The notes under the pieces are model-generated. The model was not told the DNA's origin. It saw nothing but the letters and a program-made list of their open reading frames with translations, and did not search any database. A program made the translations under genes and the position numbers. From Paragordius varius (Eukaryota > Animalia > Nematomorpha): 64,000 nt of DNA. Positions 5,450 to 62,352 of the stretch are shown one piece after another (position 1 is the stretch's first letter; the number at the start of each line of letters is the position of its first letter). Where the stretch lies: positions 9,176,001 to 9,240,000 of the forward strand of contig OZ176054.1 of assembly GCA_964247055.1 (NCBI GenBank), given 5' to 3'.

Positions 5450-5522
5450 GCCCTGGTAGCTCAGTCGGTAGAGCATTAGGCTTTTAACCTAAGGGTCTTG
5501 GGTTCGAGCCCCAACCAGGGCG
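5450..5522 (+). tRNA. tRNA-Lys (anticodon UUU)
   Basis: 73-nt cloverleaf: acceptor GCCCTGG/CCAGGGC, D-arm AGCTCAGTCGGTAGAGC, anticodon stem TTAGG/CCTAA with loop CT-TTT-AA, GGTTCGAGCC B-box, followed by an oligo-T Pol III terminator. Confidence 0.97.
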
Positions 5523-7695: not shown

Positions 7696-9903
7696 TTAAT
7701 TTAATGAAAGTTTCATATCGTCCAAAGTCCCGTTCATTTGATCGATATTAATTTCCTGTTTGCTTGCTAACAATAATGTTGCAAAAAACAATCTGGGTAT
7801 GTTTACAATTTTCGCTGGTTTTTCACAATTTTTTTCATGGTTGCCAGTGGATGATGCGCAACCCGCGATTTTAGAAATCATATTTCCAAATGATAAAACA
7901 TGTGAGTTTTGAGATAAGATATTTTGTTGGATAGTATTATTAGTATTTTGGGTGGTCTTTGGAAAACGTTTAATAGGAGAAATTTCTGAACTGTGAGATG
8001 GTGAAGACACTGTAAAAAAGCCTTCATCATCTTCCTCTTCTAATGTTTCCCCCCTTTGCTGCATCCATTCATAATTTTTAACAATTTTTTCTCGTTCGAT
8101 ATGGAGTTCAGGGGGTGATTCATGTCCGTTTAATGTTGTTGTTTGGTGCAAAATGCTTTTTATTAACAACTGATCATTGAGTATGTCCCGATTTTGTTTT
8201 CGTTTCGTTTGTGATTGTGCTCGAGGTAACACATGTGACAATATATAATTCTCCCAATCATCATAACAAGCAAATAAGTTTTGGGTAAAATTTTGATCTG
8301 ATGTATTATAAGAAGGAGCATGGCCTATTGTTTCGTTTGGCTCATCATCTGAATAACCATTATTTTCATGTTCCGATAAAGTTTCCCCACCACCTTGTAT
8401 AAAACTATCGTTTTCCATTTGGTATTCTTTAAGGATCGTTTCGTCAAGATCTCCACAAATGGATGGAGTTACATTAGTTTCCTCAGATGGTTTCTCAACA
8501 GTAGTTTTATTCACACGTTTGGTCGATTTAGCTTTTAACACACGTTTCAAAACACAACTAATGGACTTTGATATTCGTTGGTTAATATCATTATCGGTCA
8601 ATATTTTTTTGTCAGATTTGGTTTTAATCTGTTGTGAAATTGTAGATGTCGGAACAAATATTGTTTGACAAATTTGGGGTAACACTTCATTTGGCAAGCT
8701 TTGTACAAAATTTGTAGACACTGATTGCACTTTTTGTTTTCGTTCATCTGTAATTTCGCCGGATGATTCGTTTGGCGTTTGATATGACGTAATGATATCA
8801 CCATCATCATCTATTAATAGTGTGTCATCATTCATTGTAAAATCTAAATGTCTATGGGTAATGGCATCTGTAAAGTTTGTCCCTGTTATACCAAAAGTAT
8901 TGATATTGTTATCATGTCTTTTCGGAGTTGAGGATGAAACATTTTGAGGCACTAAAAACTTGTCTGGATAAGATAATATAAGGGGAGCTAAATTCAGACA
9001 CGGGTCATAAAAATGGGACAAATGCCAACCCGAGGCATGTATATAAGGATAATTTATGTTGGTTGTGTTTTTACGTATGGTAAGAGTGGTATAAAGTGAA
9101 TTATACATTCGATTACAATACTGATTGATAATTTGTCGAGATTTTTTCATGGTTTTAAGACGTTTTTTGGGACTTTCACTGACTTTTGGCGTTAAAACTG
9201 TTTCGGTAAGGTACATATCTCTTAGTTTTGTAAAAAGTTTCGGAAAATTATCTTTGTTATCTTGATCCTCCTGTAGTACAGGATGAGTATTTATTACCGA
9301 ATCATTTTTTGAAAAGACTTTATATTTTTCTAATATTGTAGCGGCTTTAAAATTATCATTTATTTGAGTTACATTTGATATTATTTTGCCCATATTATCG
9401 ATTGTATAATTTTGAGGTATGGAAAATATATTATCAAGAGATGTTAAAGGTTTTTCGCAATATTCTCTTTCATCAATAGTAGGCTCATAAATATTAGCAG
9501 AATTTTTTAATTCATTTGTTGGATTTTTTAGCGATTTCTTTAAAATATTATTTTTTATGTCCATAAATTCGTTAACTAGCGTGTATAAATGATCAACTCG
9601 TTTACTGTAAAGTAGAGAAGTGCCATGAAGCAAAAGCGAGGCTTTGGCAAAATTAATTTTCTTTTTTAGGGACGTTTGACTAGATGATAGGGAAAAGGAG
9701 GTGGTATCATTAGAATCTAAAGATGAATCGTGTGACGGAGTAGGCGAATATGACAATGCCTCGCTTTCGTTGGATAAAAGAGGATCGATTGCATTTTCAT
9801 TAATATCATACATAAAGTTAGTTAGCTTTTCACCAATATTAATATTCCAATATTCTTTAGGATCCTTTTGGACTTTCAACAAAAAATTTAAATACTCATC
9901 CAT
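7696..9903 (-). CDS. NCAPH2: Condensin II complex subunit H2 (kleisin beta), single exon, 735 aa
   Basis: Uninterrupted ORF. N-terminal YLNFLLKVQKDPKEYWNINIGEKL...INFAKASLLLHGTSLLYSKRVDHLYTLV resembles the CAP-H2 N-terminal kleisin motif; C-terminal PRLFFATLLLASKQEINIDQ resembles the C-terminal winged helix. Confidence 0.85.
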   Translation of the reverse strand: MDEYLNFLLKVQKDPKEYWNINIGEKLTNFMYDINENAIDPLLSNESEALSYSPTPSHDSSLDSNDTTSFSLSSSQTSLKKKINFAKASLLLHGTSLLYSKRVDHLYTLVNEFMDIKNNILKKSLKNPTNELKNSANIYEPTIDEREYCEKPLTSLDNIFSIPQNYTIDNMGKIISNVTQINDNFKAATILEKYKVFSKNDSVINTHPVLQEDQDNKDNFPKLFTKLRDMYLTETVLTPKVSESPKKRLKTMKKSRQIINQYCNRMYNSLYTTLTIRKNTTNINYPYIHASGWHLSHFYDPCLNLAPLILSYPDKFLVPQNVSSSTPKRHDNNINTFGITGTNFTDAITHRHLDFTMNDDTLLIDDDGDIITSYQTPNESSGEITDERKQKVQSVSTNFVQSLPNEVLPQICQTIFVPTSTISQQIKTKSDKKILTDNDINQRISKSISCVLKRVLKAKSTKRVNKTTVEKPSEETNVTPSICGDLDETILKEYQMENDSFIQGGGETLSEHENNGYSDDEPNETIGHAPSYNTSDQNFTQNLFACYDDWENYILSHVLPRAQSQTKRKQNRDILNDQLLIKSILHQTTTLNGHESPPELHIEREKIVKNYEWMQQRGETLEEEDDEGFFTVSSPSHSSEISPIKRFPKTTQNTNNTIQQNILSQNSHVLSFGNMISKIAGCASSTGNHEKNCEKPAKIVNIPRLFFATLLLASKQEINIDQMNGTLDDMKLSLN

Positions 9904-12900
9904 TCTTAAATTAGTCTTTTAAAACATATGGGTTTTACATTAAAAAAATTATAGCTGCTTTATGATCCACTTTTTGCGTATAAAAAAATAGGGGCATGAT
10001 AACTCCAGGCGAAAAGTGTTAATTAAAACTTCGATTCTGGAGTATGATCCAGATCTAACATTGGTATATACTAAAAAAGTGGTTTATATTGCATTTTTTA
10101 GTTTAGCTAAAGGACACGTGTCATGTGGACTTAATTATACCTTAACACTTAATTATCTATTTAATTTTCTATATAGTTTACTTTGTAGGGTCGTTTTTCA
10201 GGGCTTAATTTTTTTTAGTAAACTACAGGTTTGAAAGTAGTTTGAATTAAAAATTAATTACCAAACATTGATCTCATGTATTAGACAACTAATATTTTTA
10301 CATTTTTGTGACTTCCAGAGTATAATAGGACAGCCCCAAAACACGATTAAAACGAACAGCTAATATTTAAATCAAAATATCAAGTTTTTGCTAAAATGTA
10401 CCCTGAAAGCTTTTTTAAATTATATCTATATTTAAAGATAATATACAATATTTAGCCTTTTGTTTTTAAAAAATTTATGGAATAACAGCAAAAAGGAGTG
10501 AGTTGAGAATTTTTAATTTCAGATAACCCAAAAGCTTTCTATTATGACTCAACATAGCATGAAGATTTTTATCAAAATTTTGCTAAATATTAAATTTAGG
10601 TACGCATTTTTCAAAAAATTTTAGTTTATATCAAAATTTAGCTTATATAAATTTTTTTATCACGCATTCCCTGCATTTTGCGTTTATTTAAAGAGGACAA
10701 GCCCAATCAAAAAAATTTGGGGCCCTCAAAGATCAAACCTAAGAATTTAAATTTTTTGAAAATATTGTTTCGCATTTTATAGGTAGTTTATGATATATTT
10801 TAGTGATATTTTTTGGTAAAGCCTTTAGCTTTCACAAAAAAATTTAATTAAAAAATTTGCGCAAATTTTGTCATTTTCTAGTTTGTAATCACACCTGTGT
10901 GATTATCTTTAACCAGCTGATCCTGATAAATATATATATATGACGTATTATTTTTATGGACATTCTATACATGAGAAAAATGGTTATTAATCAAATTTTA
11001 ACTAAAATAACTTTCAGAACATTAGTTTAATTACAAATTGAGCTTTGGGATATAGAAATATGTCATCGCGAACAAAAAAGTGAATAAACATGAAATTCAA
11101 AGTGTAAATTAAAATATGAACTTTCATAAAAATATAAAATCTTGAAAGTAAATTTTTATCATAAGTAGCTTCTTAATTTGTTTGGCCTCTATGTAATTTA
11201 TTTTTATAATTAAAATATTTACAGTTTGGATAAGTCAATGAGAATTTATATTAAACGAATGGAAGACTAGAGCAGTAGGATAAAATAAGTTAGTATATAA
11301 TTCATTAACGTTTTTTTATTTTTAAACAATAAGATTTTTTCTTCTTTGTGTGCCAGCGTTGTGATTGGTTTTTAATGAGACCCAATAAATCTGTATATTC
11401 CGACAGCTACTAAGTTTCATACATGAAATTAAATTGATTTGAGAATCTCTCTTTATAATATTTAATTAAAATATCTAGATAAAATGTAATGATAAAGAGG
11501 CTTCATACATTGTATCCACAAAAAATATCCTGATAAAATATATAAATATATTATGAAGGTATCGGGATGCTCATGGTGCTTTCGGTTTTGGTCCTACGGG
11601 TATTTTAACACTTCATTACATTTTCATTTTGTATTCTGTAAGTTTAGGGAAAGTTTTGTACCCAAAAGTAGTAAATATATTACTATTTTGAAAGCTGTTT
11701 TGTTTATATCACATTTTATAACCTTATGGGGTTGTTCCATACCAACAAGGCCATTTAGAATTGATTTATCCAAAATATTTTAGCATTGGCCAAATTTAAA
11801 TATGCTTTTAGCATTTTAGTCGAATGATACAATTTTATGTAAAATTGTAAAAAATTTCACCTCAAACTCTTTCGCTGCCAATTTTTAAATCGGGAATACT
11901 ACACGCAAATAACTGTTTATCATGGTAGAAATATAAAAAATTAACTTTAAACAAATTACAATTTACTATAACATTTTTAATATAGATTATAATATCTGCT
12001 TTAAGTTTGTTTGCAGCTGCCTGAGTTTGTGTCTATAGAAACTCAGTAAAAATCCAAGTTTTTTTTATCTAAACAGAAGAAGAGAGTTTAATAATTAAGT
12101 TTAAACAAAACAACTTACAAAGTTATTTTTGCCATTAAACCTATGGGGATGGGGAATAAACTATCCCAAATGTCATAACGGATCCAAAAATTAATATGTA
12201 CTGAAATATTAATTATCCCTTTTCTCGTATATAACACAATTGGAATTTATTTTATTTTATATCGCTTACAATAGGCAAATAAGTGAAATATAAATAATTA
12301 ACTTTACTAAGCTTTCATGTTGCATTTTAGCATAAACATGTTATTTATAGATTTAGAAATCAACTGTTTAGTTTAATCTTGTTATGGAGGTGTAATCTAG
12401 TTTTATTTTTTATTTGAATCATTGAGAATCCACTTTAACATGAATAAGTTGATCCAAAAGGAAAATATGTATGGCAATTTGAGATGATATTAAGCAATGT
12501 GTTTTATTCAAATTACCTGGATATTAAGATTAAACAATGATTTTTTTTGTTAAATCATACTTTAATTCCAATGCGTCTTCTTGTTTCTATGAGAAGAGTG
12601 TTTACATCAACTGTAAATGTATTATAAGGTAAATAATCATACAGATAAAAAATCTGGATAAATTCCTCCACAAGAAACAAATGATCATTTATTCAATTAA
12701 TAATAAACGTATTGTTAGATATTATAAACAAATTAAAGGTCGGAAACTTTCAATATTTTTAACCTTTGAAATCCATAAACGCATTTTTCCGATATTTGTT
12801 TTAATCATTTATGTTTCCTTGTATTTTTGGCTTTTTAAGGCTTTTTTTTATAATATTTAGAAAGAACCAGTGAAAAAAAAATTAGACACAATATGTGTTA

Positions 12901-38878: not shown

Positions 38879-40918
38879 TCAAAAGTGACAAATAGAAAGC
38901 TGTCCAATCATGATGGCATTAACCAGTCTGGTCAGATCAAACACTTAAATTTATTTCTAACTCGAATCTACCAATTTTTATAAATATTTAGTTTTTAGCC
39001 TTTAATTTGTCAACATTTAATATTACATATAATTCAATAGCATATAGTATAAAAAGTACTATTAAAAATGCATGCATACTGTAAATTACAAATTTTGTAC
39101 GGAGTTCATTTCAACTGTAAATGTTGAGTTAAAAAAAAGCATCATAGGTATGTGATGAAAAGGAAGGAATCCCTTGGGGGTGTTACAATATTATTTGAAT
39201 ATGTGTGTACGTCTAACAAAACTTTACAAAGGTGAAATAATAAATTTTAGGAAAACGAATTATTTTAAATACAAATATTTTCTCATGTCATAATAAAACC
39301 AGATCATGTGGTCTCATTCACTTTAACACTCCATCACCTTTTGGGGTAGTTTTATATCCTAAAGCGATTCAAAATTTGTATCATAAAAAGTATTTTAGAT
39401 ATTAAGCCGAATTAAAAAATATGCTTTCTTAAGGCTTTTAGGCGCATTACACAGAAATGTTTTTTTAAAAAATGTAAAATTGTAAAAACCCTAAACTCAA
39501 ATTTTTTGCCGCCATTTTTTTATAAATTTTTAAATCGCTAACAGATGTTTGTTTAAATCAAGTTTAGGGGCTGTCCCATCTATAAGTTACAAAACTGTAA
39601 AAATATAAGCTTTTTTATCTAATATATAAGAACATTGTTTAATGATTAATTAATTAAAATAACTTTCAAAACAAACAGTAGTTAATTTACAAAATTAAGC
39701 GATAAATCACCCCAAAACTTAAACACCAAAAAGTGAAAAGCTAATGAAGTGCTAATTCTACTAAATAAAATATATATAATTTACATATAAACATTTTTTT
39801 ATTTATATAAAAATATATAGATAGATAGCGTCGTTGATTAACAAATATATTAGGTACCCCAAAATCAATATGAATATGCTGTTAAAATATTGAGCAAAAA
39901 TAATATATTTTTAAGTTAGTAATGTGTGTGGTATGCGAAAATATGAATGTGTGTCAATAATTTTTGATGATATCGATTTCTTAAACACACTTTTTTTGCA
40001 TTTGTAAAAAAATATAAATAAATAAGTTGTATATCTTCTTTATTATCTGGAATTAAGTTAGGGAATATATTGGGGTGTCATATATTGAGAATTATTAAAT
40101 TAATTGAAAAACATAATAATAAAATTTAGTATGGGAAAAAACTCAAACAAAAGTTGTCGTTTAAGGTGATTTTTTAAAGCTTTAAAAATTGAGTATTTGT
40201 TGAAAAACTACAATTTGCCGTACAACATACTCGGTAAATTTAAAATAGCAAATAAAAATATATATAAATGTATTATGATATTAATTTGTTTTACAAAATT
40301 ATTAACTTTTATATATGAAAAAATTTTATCTAAAATTAAAATTAAGAGACCAATGTGTGTAATTCATGTAAGTGTTAAATGATTAATGTCACACGTAAGA
40401 TAGCTGTAATAATTGATAATTATTCTAACAATTTTATAATGAAAATATGACAGGGTATATATCTCTTAATCATGATAATGTTGTCTAAAATCGATATTAT
40501 ACTTGTTTAAAGCTTAAAACAATATAAAAAATAAATATAATGATTTGAGACTGATGACATGAAATTATATAAAAAATAAATTTTCTAAGAGTATTGTTAA
40601 ACCTTAAAAATATAAATGACAAAAAAGGTAAAAGCCAATCCAAGCATATACATTTAAAAAAATTGAAAATTAAAAATTATGTAATAAAGGAGGATAATAG
40701 AAGAATTTAATGAAAAAGGATCAAAACTTATAGTGTCGATTAATTATTAAAATAAAAAAATATATTGAAAATAGAGTTACAAAATTGAGCTCATTAGAAT
40801 TATAAAACTTTTATTAATATATAATCAACAATATACCTTTTAAGGATAAATCGAATTCCAACATAATATCCTTCTCTTTTCTAATTTTTTTATCTACTGT
40901 ACTAATTGCTGAAGACAT
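15475..40918 (-). CDS. SRGAP: SLIT-ROBO Rho GTPase-activating protein (F-BAR + RhoGAP + SH3), 25 exons, ~1787 aa
   Basis: Exons: 40918-40837, 38416-38233, 35731-35566, 34847-34785, 34238-34095, 31479-31351, 30852-30631, 30394-30166, 29564-29453, 28385-28244, 28160-28053, 27799-27500, 27026-26966, 26548-26471, 26381-26217, 22986-22914, 22565-22357, 21917-21768, 20897-20658, 20405-19773, 19104-18910, 18478-18346, 17731-17481, 16856-15843, 15755-15475; total 5364 nt, all GT-AG with consistent phases. Motifs: KIRKEKDIMLEFDLSLKDLKTQLNEQLKC, SEIEMEYSRNLDKL, ARNEYILCL, KLFGGSLEEY, GLHHQGIFRVSGSQ (Arg finger), INSVAGVLKLYLREL, YLFAFLNHLSQYSDENMMDAYNLAVCFGPTL, ARFNFTGRNPDELSFNKGD..WW..EGLVPTNFI. Low-complexity exons are less secure. 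Confidence 0.92.
23440..25270 (-). mobile_element. Degenerate RTE-clade LINE (APE endonuclease + RT fragments) in srGAP intron
   Basis: QVYAP, FVIGDYNA..GKGLGKAKNPRGE..NQIDYIL endonuclease motifs (ORF 24923-25219); FVDFSKAFDT and GCILSPILFNIYLE RT motifs; many stops and frameshifts. Confidence 0.85.
25320..26150 (+). mobile_element. Second RTE LINE fragment (RT C-terminal half and 3' end), inverted relative to the first
   Basis: GLRQGCILSPMLFNIHLE, then KLQFINALIFPTILKGSESWTIK..INAFEIFCWRKILGITWKDKVKN, typical of the RTE C-terminus; homologous to the reverse complement of 23440-23880. Confidence 0.85.
29887..30133. mobile_element. MITE family B copy (further copies 28584-28860, ~29182-29400)
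   Basis: TA|CCATTTACAATTCAAATTCAC ... GGGTGAATTTGAACTGTAAGTGA|TA. Confidence 0.75.
31646..31869. mobile_element. MITE family B copy with 25-bp TIRs
   Basis: Left CCATTTACAATTCAAATTTACCCTT versus reverse complement of right end CCATTTACAGTTCAAATTCACCCTT (2 mismatches). Confidence 0.8.
32201..34069 (+). mobile_element. PIF/Harbinger DNA transposon with intact ends and a decayed HARBI1-like transposase
   Basis: Perfect 17-bp TIR GGGCCTGCTGAATAAAA (32201-32217 / 34053-34069), 3-bp duplication ATA on both flanks. Transposase remnants ~32980-33740: MPTAIGCIDCSY..YINRKG..LNVQFTC, LLGDNGYP, RSIIER.FGQMKTRFPIL, TCSILHN, interrupted by stops and frameshifts. Confidence 0.92.
36573..36772. mobile_element. 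Foldback MITE with near-full-length inverted arms
   Basis: Perfect 27-bp inverted arms 36581-36607 / 36739-36765 and perfect 21-bp inner arms 36632-36652 / 36692-36712, 39-nt loop; starts TACAGTG (Tc1/mariner-like). Confidence 0.8.
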
Positions 40919-41838: not shown

Positions 41839-44339
41839 TTAATAAAAAAATAAATGAAAAAAAACGGTCACAATTTAAATGTATGCTTCCATCCTATTGA
41901 ATATTATATAAATAAACCTAAACTTCTAAATAAAATTAAGTTTTAAAAAAAGTCCATAGCAAATTACTTCGGCGCCATTTTAGTTTTTAAACATTATTGA
42001 AAAATATCGTGTTTATATTATTCTAAGGCTATTACGTTACCTTTTTTATTAACATTTAACATTATTATCAGAAAAAGGCTTATATTGCATTATTTTTATA
42101 TTTAGCATACGCACACATGCCATGACGGCTAAATGTTTTCCTTTGGGATTTACCTCCAAATAAAAATTATCAAGTATTTTTTTGTGAATTTTTTTATATT
42201 TTGGTTGATTGTTATACAAGTGTAAACTTTTTCCATGTTCAATTCTTTCCATATTTCTTGAATTATTTAATTTTAGACAGGCCTGGGCTATCCAACTACC
42301 CCAATTGGAAGCGAAGGATCGAAATGAATGTCTTGTATTTAAGTGTTAAGGCTAGAGAAAGTATATTTTTAAATTCGGTTAAATACTCTAATACTTTTCA
42401 AGATATCTTTAAATCGCTCTGGATAATACCCCAGAACATGATCGAGTGTTAAATATGAAAATTTATAATTTAAATTTTTATTTATAACTTATGGATTTTA
42501 AAATTTATTTTATTTTAATTTGAGGAAAAAATACATTTATTTACGAATCATGACCATAAAACATCTCAATAAATTATTTATTTTGTTAGAATCTATTATT
42601 CTTATGGATTTTGGTTACAAGCCTTAAAATTATTACTTTTGATAAACCAGATGTCAATCGCAAATTATTGAAAGAAATATATTTTTGTTTAAAGCTAAAT
42701 GCTTTAGTGTATGTAATTATCTTACATTATATATAAAATTAAAATTTTTTTTAAAATTATTTAAATTGCATGTTAATGGACTCCTCAAATTTTTGGCCCC
42801 TTTAAAATTAAATTGTTATTTATGCATACATGTAACAAAATTTAACGATATATTTAACATATCCATAACCTTTTCACTTGAGAATCTTGTAAAAACACTA
42901 CTGTTTTGAAAGTTATTTTAGTGAAAATTTAATTATCAAACGTTTCTGGCCTGGATTAGATAAAAAGGCTTATATTTTTTACAGTTTTATGACTTCAAGA
43001 GTGTATTGAGTTCCAAAAGACGATTGAACTAACCAGCTGATTTTAAATATATATCAAATTTTTGTTGGTAAGCAACCTAAAAGCTTAATAAAAATTATAT
43101 ACATCCATAGCAGAATATACACCTATTGCCTGTTGTATTAATTTAAATAATTATTTAGGGTTAGGTTTAAAGAAAAAGGTGACGACAAAAAGGGTTGAGA
43201 TGAGAATAATATACAATTTTACATTTTGAAATACAAATTTTTTTGTATTATGCGCCTAAAAGATTAAAACTGTCTTTTTAGATTTGGCCTAATACCTTAA
43301 ACCATTTTTTAAGATATTCAATCTATTAATCGCTCTGGGATATAAAACTACCCCAAAAGACAATGAAGTTTTAATATAAACAGTGTACGAAATTGGGAAG
43401 ATAAAAATATCCTGGTGAAATATAGATTTCGATGGGAAAATATATAAAGTCTGTTAAGTGCCCCATATACAGTGTCCACAATAAAATAACCTGATGAAAT
43501 ATAAATATTTTGATAGGAAAATGTATAAGGATTATCATGGCGTTTTTGGTTTTGGCCCTTACTGATAAAAATTACGCTTTTGTAGTAAGTGCTCCATATC
43601 AGAAAATGACAAAATTTGCGCGCATTTTTTAATAATTTTTTTTTGGCCAAAGCTGAGTGCTTTGTTCGAAAAAATATCACTAAAATATATTATTATAAAC
43701 AACGTATAAAAAGCAAAAAAATACTTTCAAATTTAATTTTTAGATGTCGGTTCTGAAACCCAAATTTTTCGCTCTTTTAAAATGGGGAGTTCCTTTCAAT
43801 ACACGGAGTAACGGGATTGCATGTGAATTGATTCTGATAACTATAATATTTTTACAAAAATGCATAATTAAAAATCTAATTTTTAGCAAAATTTTGTTGA
43901 CGCGTCTTCATGAAAACGGAAGTATATAATTCAGTGATGCTGAACATTTCTTTCATGTTTATTGAATCGTCTAAATTTATGTTAAGCTATAGCCAAAGAA
44001 CCTTTAAATTAAAATGAAGTGATAAAAATTTTCCGTAATCCATTATATAGAAAAATGTTTTCATAATATAATAAAGCGTTTTATCCCCTTTTCATTATGC
44101 CTTAAAATAGTATGAGGTGTGTTTCAACAAAATTTTGCTAAATAAATTTATAAAAAACTGTATCTAAATATTTATTGATATCAAATTTTAGCATATTCAA
44201 AAATTTTATTGCGTGATCCAAACAAATTTTCTTAATCTTGTGAACCAGAGCTGTATATTATAAATTTTAAAGTCTCTTGAAATTGTTAATAATGCACAGA
44301 ATTATTCCTTAAAAAACCTATTTTCATTATAATCAAAAA

Positions 44340-49169: not shown

Positions 49170-52100
49170 TTAGCCTACAGTTGAATTTGTTATTTGAGGT
49201 ATTGTTGATTCTTTAGTAGGATCCGATCGTTCTGTCGTAAAGATGTCCTTAAAAAAATCTTTGTAAGTTGTGAAGCTTGTTAAACTGATTGATTCATCGT
49301 CAGTTGAATATGGGTTTGACTTAATATTATTATTTGCGGTTGATTCCATGAACGGCTTATAGTTATATAATTCTTTTGGTACATTTGGTTCAGAAGTAGG
49401 GGTGAAAGGTTTAGAATAATTATTTGATATGCCATCTGCTGTAGTAGATATAGAATCATCTATGTTCATATTATTATTTATATTATGCCCAGTATTAGTG
49501 TAAGTTATGTTATCCTTATCTAACCCAAATAAAGGATTAAAGAAAGCAAACTGTTCCCTAAATTTGCTGACGAAAAAGGCATCACGCCAGTACCTGTATG
49601 ATAAACACATGGTGGTAAATATAAGGATACATAAAGTTATAGACAACACGATAACCGTATATTGGGAGCTTATAATTTGCATAAACTTTGATTGTACCAT
49701 CATATTTTCACTACAAGCGTTCAATTTTTCCATATCTATTTTTCTACTAATATTTTTACTTGAACATCTATCTTTTGCATTTGTGCTATTGACTGATAGA
49801 TTACTATTAATTAAAGGTATGATGACACTATTATTAGGCAATGAATTATTGGATTTTATAATATTTTTGTTTTCAATATTGGAATCTGGTGATATATCCA
49901 GTTTTGTTTCATTATCCCCCAATACACGAACACTAATATATTGGCCTTGCTGCTGATTTGTAGGTGTTTCAGCATCTGGGCTTTTTGCAGACCGATTACT
50001 TACACATTCCATATACAGGGATGAATTCGCAACTTTTTTGGATAAAACACCTGAATAATAATTTAATCGTAACATATTACGGATGAATAGGGCTAGATCA
50101 AGTCTATTAACTGTACAATCTATTGGATTTCCAAAAATGGTTACATACGTGATCCACAGGATATTTTGAATGTCAGTCAGCGAGTTTTGATGTATATATA
50201 AGATTTCAAGTGATTCCGGGAAGTTGACGTTATTTATGCTCGTTATGAGATTGAATGACAAATCCAACGAATACAATTTGGTTAAAGTTGAAAAGATTTG
50301 TTTGTTCAGGCTGTAAATTTTGTTACAGGCCAATCGTAATTCCCTAATTTCGTTGGAATATGCGAACAGGGTAGCACCCAACTTGGTTAAACTGTTTGCA
50401 CTTAAATCGACATACGTTAATTGATTTAGACCGGCGAATGTATTATCACTCAATTGCACGTGTGTATTGTTGGTGAGCGTTAAATTCTTGAGTTGTTTGA
50501 AGCATCGAAACATATCCTCCAAATACAAGTAAAATAATGTGAAGTCACTTTGTTCTATCCAAAGCGTTTGTATGTTTGTGCAAAAAAACGTTTTTTCATC
50601 GATTTTTTTGGCCAAGGCCTTCGCACCAGGACTATCTACGTTAATAAAGGACCAATGGTATGTCATGTATTCATTACGTCCTATGTAACTATCGTACGTG
50701 CTAACTATTATACCTATTAAATACGATTAATATTTATAAATAAATAAAAATATCTAAAATATTATATAATCAATAATAATAATAATACACTGTTTAATTT
50801 AATCTATTTTTCATTAAAATTCTCCCTTGTTCTATACATATATATGTTTGCTCTTTTAATTTACCGAAAAAATTTTTTTACTCACTCTTTAAACAAGACT
50901 CACCGACAATAATTTAATTGGTATGGCATATAACAGCTTATTCGATTACATTTTGAATGTATACCATTTACACTTCAAACCTTTAAAGAATTCAAATTTG
51001 CCCTTGAACAATTTAAATTCAACCCCGAACAATTTGTATTTATCTTTATAGTAACCATAATTACTATATAACATTTAAAAGTAATTAATTTAAAGAGGTT
51101 AAAGCTGGTTGAAAAGTTATAATTTTTTCTCAATTTTGTGTAAAAACGGTTGGAATGGAAAGAAAACGGGTTAATTAAAATGGGAAATGATTAGCACATG
51201 ATTTTGATTGTAAAAGTTATACATAATTAATATTTTTATAATTATTTAGGTAAATCGTTGACTTACTTAAAGAAGTTTGTTTGCAAAACATTATTTTGGC
51301 CCCGTACTCCATTACATTATTAACATTATTATTAATGTTATCCATATTCATATCTAAGCTTCCGATTTCCGAACCAACATAACAGAGATCAGGTATATCA
51401 CAATAGTGAATATTTTTTATTTGTAAAATACTTTGATTGTTCAAACTTTCTTGTTTACCACTAGTATTAGAGAGATTACTGTAAAAACAATTTGTTATAT
51501 TGGGATTCCGTAAGATTTGTCTGTTTTTGGACATGCCTTTCGTTAATTGTTCCCATGTGGGCCGATTTTCACATAAACAAGTTAGAGGATTCGACCAAAT
51601 AGAAAGTGCTTTGAGTGTTGAATTTAATAGGTGTGCAGCTACAAAATTTATATCAGAAATACGATTGTTATGGACAAACAACATTTTCATTGCAGTGTTG
51701 GACAAATCAAGTGTTTTTAGGTTATTGTGGCTGAGATCTAAACTTTCTAGTTTCGTCCAGTCATTTATTCGTTTATCAAGTATTAGTGTCTCTATCTGGT
51801 TGTGACTGAAATTTAAGTATTGTATGAGTTTTTGACTCGCTAAAATTTGGGACGGTAATGACATTATTTTATTATAACTCATGTCTAAAGTTATCAAATA
51901 ATTTGTTTTTGCACCAAAAAGGGTAGGTATTTCAGATAAAACGTTATGTGATAAATTTAAGTATAGGAGATTTGGTAGATTAGAAAAAGCATTTTCATCA
52001 ATTTTACTTATGTTACATCGACTAAGATCTAACTTAGCTAATGAGGGCGCACCATTAAAGTAAGATGTTTTTATTTTATCCATCCGTCCGTGCATAACAA

Positions 52101-52521
52101 ATGATTCCAACCTTGTTAGTTGGGTTAAATTCATCAATGATGATGACACAGTCACATTGTCAAAATAAATGGTATTTATGAATGTATCATATAATTTGGT
52201 TGATTTCGGGTTACATTTTACCAAGGAAAGATCAATGTCGGTTGCTTGAACATCAACTATTTCCAGGTTTGATATGTAAGCACATTGTTGTTCAAACAAA
52301 TATGGATTGTTTTTGAGATGAAGTCCATTTATGTTTATTAACTTAACATTTTCAATCACGGTATTTGTATTATTTATTATATTATTTAATTGTTCGTAGT
52401 CTAGATCTGTTTGACACGTTACCATGGCTACGCCTCTGTCAAATATACATTTTGCTGCACAACGATTTAAAACATAAATATAAAAAACCAAAAGAAACAT
52501 ATATTTTTGATTGAATTTCAT
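49170..52521 (-). CDS. LRR transmembrane receptor 1 (Toll-like ectodomain with two Cys-capped LRR blocks, no TIR), ~921 aa
   Basis: Exon 1 52521-51267 (signal peptide MKFNQKYMFLLVFYIYVLNRCAA, LRRs such as LAKLDLSRCNI, LLYLNLSHNVL, cap SNPLTCLC); donor GTAAGT at 51266; acceptor CATAG before 50680; exon 2 50680-49170 (LRRs, GNPIDC, TM IVLSITLCILIFTTMCL, ~140-aa low-complexity tail). Phase-1 junction keeps the frame. The ORF track start at 52551 is a TTG. Confidence 0.82.
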
Positions 52522-52674
52522 TGATTGATTGTCATTAGAATACCTAAACAATCATATAACTACTTATCACACATTGTGATCGGGTTTAATGTATGTTTTA
52601 ATATATAATTTAATGATATTATACATAGATAATGCAATGAAAGTGTTAATAAATTGCATTAATCATTCATATGA
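52522..52674. promoter_or_regulatory. Putative bidirectional promoter/5' UTRs of the LRR receptor pair
   Basis: 153 bp between divergent ATGs; dyads ATCACA-cat-TGTGAT (52566-52580) and TAATGCAAT-N14-ATTGCATTA (52630-52661). Function inferred. Confidence 0.5.
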
Positions 52675-55600
52675 ATGATCCAAATTATTCAAACATTGTG
52701 TTTACAATTCTTGAGTCCCTTATGTTGTCTTGTAATTTGTCTTTTGGTTGTGGATAAAACAAATTTTGTTGAATCAGGATTTAATGTTAATGACTGTGAT
52801 CCTAGTCATACTATAGCGATGCAAGACATTGATTTTACAAACTTAAAAAAATTAACTGATCATTTAATTATGTGTCCAGGTGTGGAGAAAATACAACTTA
52901 AACGTGTCAAAAATTATGCAAACTCCGTGTTGGTAGATATCCAAGGCTTATTTTGTAAGCACAAAATAGTAAGCGTCGAATTATCCGAAATATATGGCTC
53001 GAATCAAATAATGTTTACAATAGAACCTTGGTTATGTCCTGCTGGTGTTAAGAATAACACAATACTGCAAGAATTCATATTGAAGGATCACCTTTTTTCC
53101 TATGCGCTCTCTGGTTACATTTATGCCCAAAATTTATCTTATGTCAGTATAACTTCAGGGACTCTGTTAGCCGTGAATCGTAATACATTTAATGGAACAG
53201 CCATAATAACATTAAATATATCACAAAACACCATTGAATATATCCATCCCTTGGCCTTTGCTAATATGACACAATTAACAAATTTATATTTGCAAAATAA
53301 TAATATAAAGGTAATTACTTCCACAACTTTTTTGGGGACATATTATATTATGCGTCTGGATGTTAGTTTCAATCTCCTAACATTCCCTGTTAATAATGAT
53401 ACAAATTCTTTAAACAAAAATAGTCTAATTGAAATTTTAAGGCCGTTTAGACGGTTGTCACGATTAGATTTACACAACAATAAATTAACTTTTTTTGATA
53501 GCCTAAATATGTTTCCACGAGAGGTAGCATTTACCCTGACCTACCTTGATTTATCATCGAATGTAATACAATGGGTGGCTATTGATTTTTTGCCAGCACT
53601 GACCTACCTAAATTTAATTGATAATCGAATCACTACTCTAACGGTTCGGAACGATTATAATTTGGATGTGACAGATTTTATGATTTATTCTAACGAACTA
53701 AACTGTGACTGCAATATGATCCCATTTTTAGGGGTGTACAAGAAATTTTTAAAAATATCTTCCGATTCTGAATCAACACCCACCACATTTGGCACTGAGG
53801 TGAAACGTCGTAATGTTCAGGCCGGTTACCGGACACTGTGTAAAACTCCAACAAACGTTGCCGATAAAGCTTTTATGGAATTGTCAGATACCCAGATATA
53901 TTGTATGGAAAATTATACGAATGAATGCTATATATTTGATGCCAATTTTAGTTTGGTCTGTGTGGGGACCAGTAATAATGCGGTAAGAGTTGCCTTAGCT
54001 ACCATACGTTTGGAGAAAAAGAACATCACGAAATGGATAGTTCAATATATTGACATAGAAATATTTCCTACCGAATATGACTCTTATTTATGCAATGTTA
54101 CGGACGTTTCTCTCAAAGGCAATAATCTTGTTGGGTTTGAAAATGGTAATTTAAAGCTTAATATATCCATAGTAACCTTAATACAATCTGTTCTACTAAT
54201 AGGATAGATTTGTATGTATGTCTAGTATGAGTAAAAAAAGTTTGCTAGTTTTTTATTGCCAGATAATACTTACAGTAGAGAGATAGATAATTTATTGGTA
54301 TAATATTGGCATTGTATAAATGTATTTTTTGGCCTTTTCTTTCTTTTACCCAAAATTTCTTTACTTTAAGTGCTAGGCCAAATTTGATAAATAAGTAGTT
54401 TTTTACATTTATATATCTAAATAGCGGAGACTCTCACACTTTGCTGTTTTTTATTCGACAATATTATTTAAATAAAATTGCAATAAACAGAATATGATTT
54501 AGTCACAGAAATAATTCATGAATCTATATTTAACATAGTACGGTCCTAACCTGGTCAAGTTTAAAAAAGGCTTGACTAAAATGCAGTAGACACCCCTTAT
54601 AAAGATCCACCCCCTCCCTCTTTTATACACAGCCTTGGTGGTTAAACAGCGCTTAAAAACTAATTACCATATACCGATCCTTTCCCAAATAAGGCTCAAA
54701 TTTTTAACTTAAAAGCTTTCCGAGGTTAGAAAACTCTCATAAAGATATATATTCGCTCAAAAAACTAAATTTAACCAATGGCTGCTTTTTAATTTTTTAT
54801 ATTTTTATTTATGAATGAAAAAATAAATAATACTAAATTACATTTATATCCTTTTTCAAGCTATTGAACTTATAAAGTAAAGCGTTAAAATGTAAAATCG
54901 ATCTTTAAAAATAAAATTAGTATTTTACTAAATTTATTTAAACGGGGTTAGAATGTAAATAATTAAAGCGTCGTTTTATCTAAAAAAACTTAGTTTCAAC
55001 ACCCTATCTTAACTTAAAAATATGCCCCAATCAACTAGGTATGAATATTAAATAGATGTTTTTTTCAATCTTCAAATCAGTTAAAGGAACATATTTATAT
55101 TAATTTATTACATTTATAAATTTTGATCTTAAGTACCAGTAGAGTTTAAAATTTAGTAGTAGGGTGGAATTGTAGGAGCTTCTGGAAATAAGGCTTTATT
55201 TAAACTTTATAAATTAACCCACCATATATATGCTTATAATTTTATTACTTTTGAATTCATTTAAAAAAAATTATTTTTACATTTTAAACGCCTAACTTTT
55301 AAATTGTCAAAGAGACAAACACAAGCTGTGAATTGCTGTATCAAATTAAGCCATTAATAAACATTACAAAATTTACAGCTAACTATTCATTACTTTTTAA
55401 TTTTATGCAAGTTCACTCCGATTAGTTTCGCAGAAAGCTAGTATTTTACATAAAAATAAAAAAAGCTCGCAGTTCAAACCATCTTTAGTATCAAATTTTT
55501 AGTTTTTCACCCTTTGGAATATAGTTTCAACCAATCTTAATAAAGAAAAGGGTAAGGGTATTACATGACCATTAACCATACTTTTTGCAAATAAAATAAA

Positions 55601-56756
55601 GAAAGAAAATAGGTATTAATTATGCACTAAGGAACAGTGTCGAAGCAACATAGAATTCAAGGGCAAAAAAAATATATAATCTTTTTAATTTAAACGTATA
55701 TATAAATTTTTTATAGCATCATTGTTATGTGGAGATCAATTAACAAGATTAGATTTGGAGGATAATCAATTTAAACAGCTTGAATGCGATATAGGTTTCC
55801 AGGCTCAATTTCAACAATTGCAATATTTAAATTTAAAGAAAAATTTTATTTCATACATACCATCCTGTGCTTTTAGGCTAAACCCAAATTTGCGGCATCT
55901 AGATTTATCCTATAATCTTTTGACAGAAATCCATGCTAATTTATTGGTTAACTTAACCCAATTAAATTGGCTAGCATTAGATCATAACCGGATTATGAAA
56001 CTTTATGATTTAAGGACACCTGTCCCATTGTCCCATTTTCAAATACATTATAACCGTCTAAAAGCCGTCAAAGCTGAATGGGTCAAATCTATGAAGTATA
56101 TAACATTCGGAGATAACAACTTTGAATGTAGCGTGGAATTCGTCTCTCTAGTCAAAAATTACATTAAAACATGGACAAACAAACTCGAAAATAATGGGTC
56201 TTCAGGGAATATAAATACACTAGCCCCTATGTGGTATGAAGAATGTTCGTTAGAATGCGAAACGCCACAACGCTATAAGATCCAGGGTAAAGTGTTTATT
56301 CGCGATTATTTTAATTTGACGCAGGCATGTAAATACGTACTACAGCAATACAAAACTATTCAAAGAGCTAATACACACGGCCAACCAAAAAAACAAACTG
56401 ATGCACCACCACCTATCGTTGTTCCAACTACACCGCTAAAATTGGAGATACTTACTACAAACTTTTTGATTGTTACCGAAACTCCTAAATCAAATACAAA
56501 AAAGCGAGTGATTATTATTTTGATTATTCTAATCATATTGTGTGTGTTGGTTGTAACTTCGTTTGTTTTATGGATAAAATATAAAAATGTTTTTCTCAAA
56601 AAATCTAACGAAGAAAAGGAAAGCGACTCTTTGACACCCATTCCATATAATAAAGAAAATAAAGATACAGACATTAGCCTTAATTACGATTACAATATGG
56701 ATGCATCAAACTCAACTACAAATTACACAAAGACTTATGAAAAAGATTATGCCTAA
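52675..56756 (+). CDS. LRR transmembrane receptor 2 (two Cys-capped LRR blocks, no TIR), ~836 aa
   Basis: Exon 1 52675-54145 (hydrophobic leader, LRRs such as LTNLYLQNNNI, LSRLDLHNNKL, cap SNELNCDC..CKTP), GT donor 54146, TTTTATAG acceptor, exon 2 55717-56756 (LRRs, DNNFECS, TM VIIILIILIILCVLVVTSFVLW, ~60-aa tail). Phase-1 junction keeps the frame. Confidence 0.82.
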
Positions 56757-57034: not shown

Positions 57035-57830
57035 AAAAAATTTGCATTTTTGACAGCTGATTCCAAAAACGGCTTATAGTTATGAAATTCTCTTGGTACA
57101 TTTGGTTGAGCAGTAGGTGTGAATGTTTCGTCTATTTTTAGCCTTCGATTAATCATGACCACTTTTTTTATCCGCTATGATGTATTGGGGTAGTTTTATA
57201 TTCCAGAGCTCAATCTTGTGAGTATATTTTGTTTTTAAAGTTATTTTAGTTAGAATTTGATTATCAAACATTGTCTTGTATTAGATATTTTACAGTTTTG
57301 ATGTCTACAGTCTTACATTAGGACATCTCCGAAACACGATTCACTTAAGCAGCTAACAATATATATCAAGTTTTTGCTGGTAAAATACCACCTGAAAGCT
57401 TAATAGAGTTAATTATTTGCATTTTATAACCATAATATACATTTATTTTCCTTGTGTATTAGCGATTTAAAAAAATGGCGGGTAAAAAGTAGAGGTTTTT
57501 TTTCACTACATTAGTTTAAAAAACTTGTTTTATTAGTCTAAAAGGCTAGAGAGAGCATCTTTTTAAAATCAATGTAATACTTTAATTATCTTTTAAGTAT
57601 TCAAATTTTTATCTCTCTGGGATATAAAATTACCACATCAAGTAAAAAAAATTAAAAAAGCAAACGGTTATTTAAATTTCCTTACTTAAAATGCATCACG
57701 CCAATACCTGTATGATAAACACATAACATTTGTAAATATTAGGATGCATAGAGTTATAGACATTACGATAACTGTATATTAGAAGCTTATAATCTACATA
57801 AATTTAGATTACACCACAATTTTGAACCAC
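57035..57830 (-). pseudogene. Decayed paralogue of LRR receptor 1 (TM and cytoplasmic-tail segment only)
   Basis: 57690-57830 aligns with 49575-49720 (YTVIVMSITLCILIF..MCLSYRYWRDAF) and 57050-57125 with 49335-49410 (TPT..PNVP.E..NYKPF.ES); at least five in-frame stops; interrupted by a MITE. Confidence 0.85.
57187..57636. mobile_element. MITE family C (GGGGTAGTTTTATATCCCAGAG-type TIR) inserted in the pseudogene
   Basis: Left GGGGTAGTTTTATATTCCAGAG, right CTCTGGGATATAAAATTACCAC; related ends at 39343 and 43332-43354, internal similarity to ~10310-10420. Confidence 0.7.
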
Positions 57831-59113
57831 AGTTCATTTTTTCACTCTCATTGTCTTCTCATATTTTAAATACTTTTCATTAATTTTTGACGGTGAATAC
57901 ATTTTAAGATATTGGGTGCCATCCCTAAACTGAAAATAAATTATGTTTTGATTAAAACATTAAACATCCTATATCAGATTAAAAAGGTTGTGTTTGGTAC
58001 AATTTTCTATAAGGTAAAAAGTGAGATATACGAAATACGATTATAAACAGTTGATTTGGAAAAAATCAAAAAATTTCTGCATAATTTAAAGGCTTCCAAA
58101 ACTTATGTATTAACATTTTATACCAAAAAATGAATTTATTTCTTGCCTGTTGTATTAGCGTTATAGGACAGGAAAATTGGCGGAAAAAGTAGGGATGAGG
58201 ATATATTTACAATTAAAAATATTTTAAATTATGCGCCAATATCTTAGATTATTTTTAAGATATTTAATTAAAATCGCTCAAAAACACATAAAGGCAAGGC
58301 ATGTTAATTTAAATCATGCCTTTTCAATGTTAAATATTAAATCATGAAATTTAAAATGTCAATTACTTTTTAATCTGTTTTTCTATTATTACATAAGTCA
58401 GTCCACAATAAGGGGTTCAAGATTATATATATCATTATCCAATAGAAAAATTCGAAACAGCGCACATCACGAAGTATTCAAAAAATGAATATTCTGATTG
58501 ATAGTAGAACCGAGATTTTATAATGCTTTGGTTCAATTACTTATACATCAAAGTTAATACTACTTTTGTATTGACTGCTCCATCAGAAAATGGCAAAATA
58601 TGCGCATTTATTAAAATCTTTAATGAACTGAAAATGCCTCATTACAAAAATATCGATATGAAATTCAGACAAAAATAAAAAAAATTATAATATTTTTAGA
58701 TAAGGCTCCCAAGGTCAAACTTTTTGACGGGTTTGAAAATAGCGAATTCTTTTTTTATAATTTCGAAAAAAATTCCAAAAAAATAGATATTTAATAATTA
58801 ATTTATAGCGTTCGATGAAGTGAGTTTTATGGTATTCGAAGCATGGTGGAAACGGTAAAAAAATCATTAAGTTCAAATATTGTTAAACCACTTTTCTATA
58901 TACGATAATGTTGAGCATTTTTAGAACCTCAGGATTAATTCCTTTGCTTGTAAATTTTGGTAATTTTTGCGAAAATATTTACAAAGCCTTTCACCGTTTC
59001 CATTATAATACCTCAAACATGTCCACAAAATTCTAAAAAAATAAAATATTTTTATCGGAGGATGTATCCGATTATCATTATGCTTTTTGTTTGTATTCGT
59101 ACGAGTTATTTAA

Positions 59114-60928: not shown

Positions 60929-61326
60929 ATGAACGCACCGCCGTCTTTTGAATCATTTTTATTATTTGAAGGTGAGAAGAAGTAAATATTTTTTTAATTT
61001 AGAATTATTTTTTACAAGGACACAAAAGTTCCAAATGCAGCTCTTTTTACTATTAACAAAGAAGATCACACTCTTGGAAACATTTTAAGAATGTATAATT
61101 ATTTTAATTAATAAGGCAGTTGCTAAAAGATCCACAAGTTATATTTGCAGGCTACAAATGTCCTCATCCATTGGATCATAAAGTTGTGTTAAGAATTCAG
61201 ACTACCTCAAATTATAGTCCTCAAGAAGCATTTACTAACGCTATAACAGATTTGGTGAGTGAGTTATCTTTAATGGATGAACGTTTTAGAGAAGCTATTA
61301 GAGAGAAACAAGAAGGCTACGATTAA
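60929..61326 (+). CDS. POLR2J: DNA-directed RNA polymerase II subunit RPB11
   Basis: Exons 60929-60981, 61003-61092, 61116-61326 give [117 protein letters not shown]; AATAAA follows the stop. Confidence 0.97.
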
Positions 61327-61398: not shown

Positions 61399-62352
61399 AT
61401 GCAAACCTTATCAACCATTTCATCCAATAGTTTTATCTCTTATATTATTGATGAGTGTCGAATACAAAATGATTTTATTTCAAATTATATTGCCGTTTTA
61501 TGGAATTTCTTTATTCCAAATTGTTCGTCACCCGATAAGGGTACTTTCTATTTTATCGTGATTATCAAATTTGTTGATAAAGTAATAGAATATTTGCGTG
61601 CTAAAAAATTTTCGCGTTTTTCCATAGATACTGTCGAAATCATAGCTTTAAGATTCCATACCTTATCATCGCTTATATTTTCTTACCATCGAAGTAATTG
61701 TACCTTTGATGAAACATTTATTGTTATGATATGGGACATAGCATTCTATTGTCGTGAGCAGATTGAAGAATTGATACAAAACGCAGATAATGACGATAAT
61801 CTTGATTGGAATATTTTGGTTAAAATTCCATTGAAACCAAATTTAAATCAATTGCCTAGAAAAGTTGATGCAATAAAAACAAATAATTCGTTAAATTCTG
61901 AGAACTTTGGGAGAGACATCTCCATTACAGAAAGTGATAAAGATATATATAGTGAAAATAATTTAAATGATATTTCAACCATTTCAAACTCTTCAACAAC
62001 AATTAGTATCGTAAAATCGTACAAAATAAAAACACTATCTGGGAGTGATGTATTGACAGCGTTTGATTATTTTTTTAATCACATTATGCTTGCTAAATGT
62101 TTTAAAAATAATCGAAACAAACCTAGACTCAAGCCATTAATTCAAAAACTTGCATGGTTTTCAAATGAACGCATAGAACACATGATTCGAATTGAAATGG
62201 ATGTAAGTCGAGGCGTTAAACCTGAGAAAATGTCGTATTTTTATCCTAAAGAGTTAATCCATAGACAAAACAATGTTATGCCCAATATAAATTTAAAGTC
62301 CAACAGTGTGAATATTAATGATAATAATAATAATATGATTGTTAAAAAGTAA
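61399..62352 (+). CDS. Hypothetical protein, 317 aa, no family recognised
   Basis: 954-nt ATG-to-TAA open frame in very AT-rich DNA, unlikely by chance; downstream AATAAA near 62371. No motif recognised. Confidence 0.7.
   Translation: MQTLSTISSNSFISYIIDECRIQNDFISNYIAVLWNFFIPNCSSPDKGTFYFIVIIKFVDKVIEYLRAKKFSRFSIDTVEIIALRFHTLSSLIFSYHRSNCTFDETFIVMIWDIAFYCREQIEELIQNADNDDNLDWNILVKIPLKPNLNQLPRKVDAIKTNNSLNSENFGRDISITESDKDIYSENNLNDISTISNSSTTISIVKSYKIKTLSGSDVLTAFDYFFNHIMLAKCFKNNRNKPRLKPLIQKLAWFSNERIEHMIRIEMDVSRGVKPEKMSYFYPKELIHRQNNVMPNINLKSNSVNINDNNNNMIVKK

Follow-up and report, generated by a model that had tools for sequence, protein, structure and literature searches.

Two divergent head-to-head genes for predicted TIR-less leucine-rich repeat surface proteins in the hairworm Paragordius varius

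Do two neighboring genes that start 153 bp apart and run in opposite directions encode the two chains of one receptor, or are they two members of one family left side by side by duplication? The question is raised by a locus of the hairworm Paragordius varius (Nematomorpha) within a 64,000-nucleotide stretch of contig OZ176054.1 (positions 9,176,001 to 9,240,000 of the forward strand, assembly GCA_964247055.1). This stretch is called the window here, and positions without a prefix are counted from its first letter. The window is eukaryotic and AT-rich (22-35% GC in 2-kb steps). Between 49170 and 56756, in a stretch of 25-30% GC, it contains four long open reading frames (ORFs), two per strand. 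A preliminary description of the DNA had read them as a head-to-head pair of Toll-like leucine-rich repeat (LRR) receptors without a TIR domain, forming an obligate heterodimer. We find that the two genes, here called A and B, are probably intact and divergent, and that each encodes a putative type I LRR glycoprotein that spans the cell membrane once. They belong to a small, fast-evolving and apparently lineage-specific family and would owe their adjacency to duplication.

The coding span of gene A (49170-52521, reverse strand) consists of two exons and one intron and was modeled from the ORFs, a reading of the splice sites and the LRR Pfam matches in both exons. Exon 1 (51267-52521) starts with the ATG at 52521 and a signal peptide (52453-52521, MKFNQKYMFLLVFYIYVLNRCAA). 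The N-terminal cap is followed by a first LRR block of about 10 repeats (51583-52275), a CxC..C..C cysteine cluster (51397-51582) and a C..C cluster (51268-51390). The last base of the exon, 51267, is the first of a codon interrupted by the intron, at the predicted phase-1 donor TTA A/GTAAGT. The intron (50714-51266, GTAAGT...AG, phase 1) has a length of 553 bp. There are two candidate phase-1 acceptors, which place the first base of exon 2 at 50713 or 50680; with the alternative acceptor, the intron ends at 50681 and measures 586 bp, and the predicted protein has 932 or 921 residues accordingly. Exon 2 (49170-50713) encodes a linker, a second LRR block of 5-6 repeats (50121-50492), a membrane-proximal cap (49998-50120), an N-rich stalk, a transmembrane (TM) segment (49596-49661) and a tail of 141 residues (49173-49595) before the stop codon at 49170.

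Gene B (52675-56756, forward strand) likewise has two exons and one intron and a predicted product of 836 residues. Its first exon (52675-54145) begins with the ATG at 52675 and encodes a signal peptide (52675-52752), an N-terminal cap with four cysteines, LRR block 1 (53134-53700), the CxC..C..C cluster (53701-53910), the C..C cluster (53923-53967), a linker and, at its end, the first LRR of block 2 (54088-54144). The predicted donor, AAT G/GTAATT, is again in phase 1, with 54145 as the last exon base. After an intron of 1571 bp (54146-55716, GTAATT...TATAG, phase 1), exon 2 (55717-56756) opens at the predicted acceptor ttttatag/CA. It comprises the remainder of LRR block 2 (55719-56123), the membrane-proximal cap (56124-56336), the stalk, a TM segment (56508-56576) and a Tyr-rich tail of 59 residues (56577-56753), and ends with the stop codon at 56756.

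The two start codons are separated by 52522-52674, which is exactly the 153 bp given in the preliminary description. This gap has a GC content of 23% and, when inspected, contained neither a notable palindrome nor a repeat. It probably acts as a shared, bidirectional promoter. With so short a distance, the two genes very probably have to use some promoter elements in common, which makes their co-expression plausible. Four nucleotides 5' of the start of gene B, an out-of-frame ATG (52671-52673) overlaps with it (ATGAATG) and opens a short upstream reading frame.

Both proteins follow the same order: leader, N-terminal region with four cysteines, approximately 8-10 LRRs, a CxC..C..C cluster, a C..C cluster, linker, 5-6 LRRs, a cap, a stalk, one TM segment and a tail without any domain match. 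The ORFs, the Pfam matches and the cysteine patterns thus bear out the common architecture that had been described for the pair, with a leader, two LRR blocks, cysteine caps, a TM segment and a non-TIR tail. Above cut-off, the Pfam content of all four exons is restricted to LRR_8, LRR_4 and LRR_1. Each ectodomain has about 18 cysteines, distributed over the N-terminal cap, the CxC..C..C cluster, the C..C cluster and the membrane-proximal cap, and 15-25 N-glycosylation sequons (NxS/T). The membrane-proximal caps open with C-[TS]-V (C-T-V in A, C-S-V in B) and not with CxC. A single hydrophobic 19-residue window above 1.8 was found in exon 2 of each gene. The tails had been described as short and non-TIR; the latter holds for both, but with 141 residues against 59 the tail of A is not short.

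How closely are A and B related? As the preliminary description had stated, they are very divergent: their identity is about 25% and is confined to the LRRs. Exon 1 of A aligns to exon 2 of B as well as to exon 1 of B. Since matching exons score no better than non-matching ones, the likeness between A and B is of the generic LRR type. Shuffling tests revealed no significant similarity between the non-LRR parts of A and B (N-terminal cap, middle cysteine region, second cap and tail).

Relatives of the pair were sought by exon-by-exon searches of the 110.5-Mb assembly. These found no close copies of the A or B exons and two further genes of the same layout. Paralogue C (C5:9656787-9659288, corresponding to L006:4788-7292, forward strand) is an intronless ORF of 834 residues, located on the same chromosome 430 kb from the pair. 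Paralogue D (C1:3749473-3751974, corresponding to L036:2974-5475, reverse strand) lies on another chromosome; it is likewise a single ORF without introns, encodes at least 833 residues and has a Ser-rich tail of about 150 residues. In neither C nor D was a TIR domain found. In searches within the genome, exon 1 of A and C each return the other as best hit, and exon 2 of B finds its best match in D. Exon 1 of B aligns collinearly with C over 334 residues (120-453). Outside the LRRs, only the pair B and C showed significant similarity: the score of their middle regions was reached by 1 of 1000 shuffles (z=4.5) and that of their tails, which include LTPIPYNKENK in B and LSPIPNENK in C, by 12 of 2000. 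In the all-against-all comparison of A, B, C and D, A and B form the weakest pair. A tail motif seen in A, B and C, NY.K.[YF]E, was not significant for A and was dropped except for B and C. Taken together, the family would comprise no fewer than four genes here, the pair A and B plus C and D, which have no introns; all share one layout from the signal peptide to the domainless tail.

Mapping onto the uninterrupted sequence of C also allowed the introns to be compared. The intron of A falls directly after the second cysteine of the internal C..C cluster, and that of B within the first LRR of block 2. These sites are about 75 residues apart, and the two introns are therefore not homologous in position. 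Each gene model does have a single phase-1 intron, as had been described, but the intron is not a common feature of the pair. The intron state of the family, with one intron each in A and B at different sites and none in C and D, suggests that introns were either gained independently or lost from C and D. If confirmed, these differences would make the family a small example for studying how introns come and go. The idea that the introns are mobile 'introner' elements was rejected: the intron of B is unique in the genome, and the intron of A contains only a fragment of about 80 bp of a dispersed repeat. This piece (about 50957-51047) has more than 80 matches spread over all chromosomes, frequently arranged as inverted pairs with a spacing of about 250-300 bp, a pattern suggestive of the ends of an element resembling miniature inverted-repeat transposable elements.

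Downstream of gene B, on the reverse strand, we found a decayed partial copy of the 3' end of gene A (57058-57867). It derives from the part that codes for the TM segment and the tail and consists of two pieces (57058-57123 and 57651-57867), which have 78-88% DNA identity to A and contain several stops. The presence of this partial pseudo-copy of A beside B indicates local duplication. A dispersed repeat (about 57185-57637) splits the pseudo-copy; further copies of this repeat lie in the window at about 10230-12348, 39342-39675 and 42348-43356. The flanks of C and D (4-5 kb upstream) contain no LRR-coding gene. The preliminary description had proposed a search for further divergent pairs; C and D have the layout of A and B and are solitary. 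The locus shows signs of repeated local duplication, and a head-to-head arrangement does not characterize the family. Given that C shares a chromosome with the pair and that B has a decayed copy of A beside it, the adjacency of A and B would most simply be the relic of an old local duplication.

The preliminary description had called both proteins TIR-less and had compared them with Hydra, where HyLRR-1/2, which like A and B have an LRR ectodomain and a TM segment but no TIR domain, need a TIR-bearing partner, the TIR-only membrane proteins HyTRR-1/2. Pfam detected no TIR domain in the tails of A or B, and none in any ORF of at least 40 residues within 4-5 kb downstream of either gene, where a TIR exon was looked for. 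The first of these claims therefore stands. The TIR models PF01582 and PF13676 gave no candidate in the whole 110.5-Mb assembly. As a positive control, the profile search recovered a Rel-homology domain spread over three exons of about 50 residues each (C5:3448443-3453954). With no TIR detected in the assembly, the basis for a split receptor of the Hydra type, and for a TIR-bearing partner of A and B, is removed.

When Tollo was used as query against the genome, only LRR matches were obtained. One gene on another sequence of the assembly (C3:3674478-3676979, corresponding to L023:1979-4480, reverse strand, with an upstream ORF at L023:7243-8124) carries the Toll-6/7/8 signature cluster (FLCPYEEYCAPLCQCCTFFYCDCKYVCPPGCIC) and matches wasp Tollo with 2e-16. 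After this cluster it encodes LRRs, an LRRCT, a TM segment and a tail of about 110 residues without a TIR domain. It appears to be a recognizable relative of the long Tolls that has lost its TIR domain. The signature, CxYxxxCxxLCxCCxFxxCDCxxxCPxxCxC, which lies before the last LRR block, does not occur in the translations of A or B. Judged from the profile searches, the genome may lack TIR domains altogether. Previous work reported that Paragordius varius has no MyD88, Pelle, Dorsal or Tir-1 (PMC7056985), and the assembly result agrees with this; it conflicts with the TIR-bearing Toll-like receptor (TLR) of the multiple cysteine cluster (mcc) type that the same study reported from the transcriptome of this species (PMC7056985).

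We then asked which known proteins are closest to the pair. The external queries were single exons of A or B, or C; full-length relatives of A (about 930 residues) lie outside the length window of the word-index search. This search, run with exon 1 of B, exon 1 of A and residues 330-834 of C, yielded no orthologue but generic LRR proteins with 23-35% identity within the repeats, among them ALS, chaoptin, artichoke, LRRC15, LGR and some Tolls. With A exon 2 as query, phmmer gave 12,486 matches among 1.84 billion representative proteins, the best 150 of which were giant multi-LRR proteins aligned over query residues 19-199. A close orthologue of this exon is absent from that library, because it would exceed 117 bits; weaker ones below about 117 bits are possible. 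When the sequences of the PDB were searched with C and with exon 1 of B, ALS, LRRC15, LRRTM, LGR4/5 and LRRC32 ranked ahead of Drosophila Toll (4lxr), which stood in the middle of the list. In the ESM Atlas, the clusters nearest to B exon 1 and C consist of arthropod and nematode extracellular LRR proteins, one of them of the gp150 type, and none has a TIR domain. The non-LRR segments matched nothing among 330 collected LRR and Toll proteins, either by blastp or with hidden Markov models (HMMs); a profile built from the middle regions of B, C and D likewise found no match in this set, which includes several TIR-bearing Tolls. The orthology check that had been proposed thus found no one-to-one orthology to a known LRR protein.

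Structure prediction was performed for C. From the single sequence, AlphaFold2 reached a confidence (pLDDT) of 33, and from a 47-row alignment 61.5; in the latter model, two LRR solenoids are predicted with confidence, at residues 80-320 and 480-640. A Foldseek search of the 47-row model against the PDB did not discriminate between families; it listed SHOC2, LGR4/5 and TLR3, and Toll at rank 38.

By definition, a TLR combines a TIR domain, a TM segment and at least one LRR, and LRR-only TLR-like proteins are a recognized and widespread category (PMC8609888). Since A and B have LRRs and a TM segment and lack a TIR domain, they are LRR-only TLR-like proteins and not TLRs under this definition. 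On the surface of the cell, each protein would bind an extracellular ligand or a counter-receptor on its LRR face. Any signaling would rely on short linear tail motifs or on unrelated co-receptors or membrane partners, and not on a TIR domain. In their layout, A and B resemble the P-type or mcc Tolls (Drosophila Toll, Toll-6/7/8 and C. elegans TOL-1), which are type I proteins with a large LRR block, a CxC..C..C cluster of the LRRCT type, a C..C cluster of the LRRNT type, a smaller block, a cap and a TM segment. They differ from them in having no TIR domain, no Toll-6/7/8 signature and only generic LRR similarity. 'Toll-like' is therefore a statement about layout when applied to A and B, as in the sequence and fold searches they came no closer to Toll than to the other extracellular LRR proteins. 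Vertebrate RP105/CD180 sets a precedent for a modulator that lacks a TIR domain: it also has a Toll-type LRR ectodomain, a membrane anchor and a short non-TIR tail. Unlike A and B, it carries just one cysteine cluster, is clearly a paralogue of TLR4 and works with MD-1, relations that are not demonstrable for A and B. The vertebrate synaptic adhesion proteins of the SLITRK family share two tandem capped LRR blocks, a TM segment and a tyrosine-bearing, non-catalytic tail with A and B, but their blocks are equal (six LRRs each) and no orthology is seen: SLITRK2 (4y61_B) was a weak, generic LRR match (E 1.5e-6), well below ALS, LGR4 and LRRC32. The gp150-type and nematode 'LRRCT domain-containing' proteins, the nearest language-model clusters of B exon 1 and C, have an LRR ectodomain, a TM segment and a domainless tail as well; these Atlas matches are leads only, since alignment-based orthology was not found.

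Several observations weigh against A and B as intact surface receptor genes of one lineage-specific family. The word-index, HMMER, PDB and Atlas searches found no orthologue. Outside the LRRs, the similarity of A to B, C and D is not statistically significant, and its membership in the family would follow from layout, LRR reciprocal best hits and location. The cysteine spacing fits the P-type/mcc arrangement (CxC..C..C and C..C in the middle, a second cap before the TM segment), but the Pfam LRRCT and LRRNT models remained silent on the isolated cap segments even at E<=10, and in the model of C the caps have low confidence (pLDDT <50) and are not resolved. Finally, the splice sites, like expression and co-expression, are predictions read from the DNA, and the putative function is deduced purely from domain content.

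Could the gene models themselves be wrong, in that each represents two genes or a pseudogene, or that intron retention leads to a secreted LRR protein made from exon 1 only? The exon-1 ORFs do stop soon past the donor, and exon 2 of A has an ATG of its own. However, neither exon-2 product has its own signal peptide, no ATG lies near the start of exon 2 of B, and both introns have canonical GT-AG borders in the same phase. The exon ORFs measure 344-510 codons, a length not expected by chance at 27-30% GC. The best support available is the predicted junction of B: NNLVGFEN/A/SLLCGDQLTRLDL matches the uninterrupted NNLEDLSQITGVLCNKGIQLTEL of C. As this junction is collinear with an intronless paralogue and restores an LRR that corresponds to C residue for residue, it supports the splice model of B, and we consider faulty gene models very improbable. 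The earlier proposal makes A and B partners in an obligate heteromer, a receptor of two chains or an adhesion complex, with co-expression driven by the 153-bp promoter. The head-to-head starts, the common layout and cysteine count would suit such a complex, and the strong divergence would fit sub-functionalized partners. But C and D have no LRR neighbor, so pairing does not recur within the family, as it would for an obligate head-to-head pair of the plant NLR kind, and no two members of the family are less alike than A and B. The mosquito LRIM1/APL1C heterodimer likewise combines two diverged LRR proteins, but these are secreted and linked by C-terminal coiled coils and a disulfide, whereas A and B are each anchored by a stalk and TM segment of their own; no dimerization element comparable to this coiled coil is apparent, although coiled-coil propensity was not computed. 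Of the earlier proposal, the TIR-less LRR pair with an mcc-type layout therefore remains. Nothing supports obligate heterodimerization; the solitary C and D, the weak A-B similarity, the lack of any TIR match in the assembly and the two separate membrane anchors speak against it, and a two-chain complex seems an improbable explanation of the locus.

A different origin would be that A and B are Toll receptors that descend from ecdysozoan mcc TLRs, lost their TIR domain and still bind Spaetzle-like ligands, either as TIR-independent receptors or as decoys of the RP105 type. Their layout is that of a P-type/mcc TLR ectodomain, another gene of this genome carries the Toll-6/7/8 signature and ends in an ORF that also lacks a TIR domain, and no TIR was detected genome-wide. 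What is missing is specific similarity to Toll: Drosophila Toll stood behind ALS, LRRC15, LGR4/5 and LRRTM in the PDB search and far down in the fold search, the profile of the middle region matched none of the 330 LRR and Toll proteins, and the closest Atlas clusters are free of TIR domains. Moreover, ectodomains with two capped LRR blocks also occur in the unrelated SLITRK and Slit proteins, and with a TIR-bearing mccTLR reported from Paragordius varius (PMC7056985), loss throughout the phylum is not established. We regard an origin of A and B by TIR loss as unlikely, and prefer the lineage-specific family of LRR surface proteins described above.

As members of such a family, A and B alone are two lineage-specific additions to the loosely defined LRR-only TLR-like class, which helps to annotate a poorly known phylum but is not surprising. 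The apparent absence of TIR domains throughout the genome, next to several genes with Toll-style ectodomains, is a more interesting lead than the pair itself. If it is confirmed, the combination of no TIR domain with at least five such genes, one of them with the Toll-6/7/8 signature, would provide a natural test of what these ectodomains do without TIR signaling, and it would bear on the TIR-bearing TLR reported for hairworms. It is conceivable, but a long shot, that this genome has kept its Toll-type ectodomain proteins (A, B, C, D and the Toll-6/7/8-like gene product) without TIR domains, and that a promoter-sharing A/B heteromer binds Spaetzle-like cystine-knot ligands and signals by tyrosine motifs in its tails instead of TIR, MyD88 and NF-kB. 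If true, the Toll ligand-receptor module would have been rewired to work without TIR.

The window contains other genes on both sides of the pair. Upstream in window coordinates, a tRNA-Lys(TTT) gene lies at 5450-5522 (forward strand) and an ORF for the condensin II subunit CAP-H2 at 7696-9903 (reverse strand). The next gene after B is represented by an exon for an RPB11-type RNA polymerase subunit (61120-61326, forward strand; PF13656, 7.5e-18), which is followed by a TNFAIP8-like ORF at 61399-62352 on the same strand.

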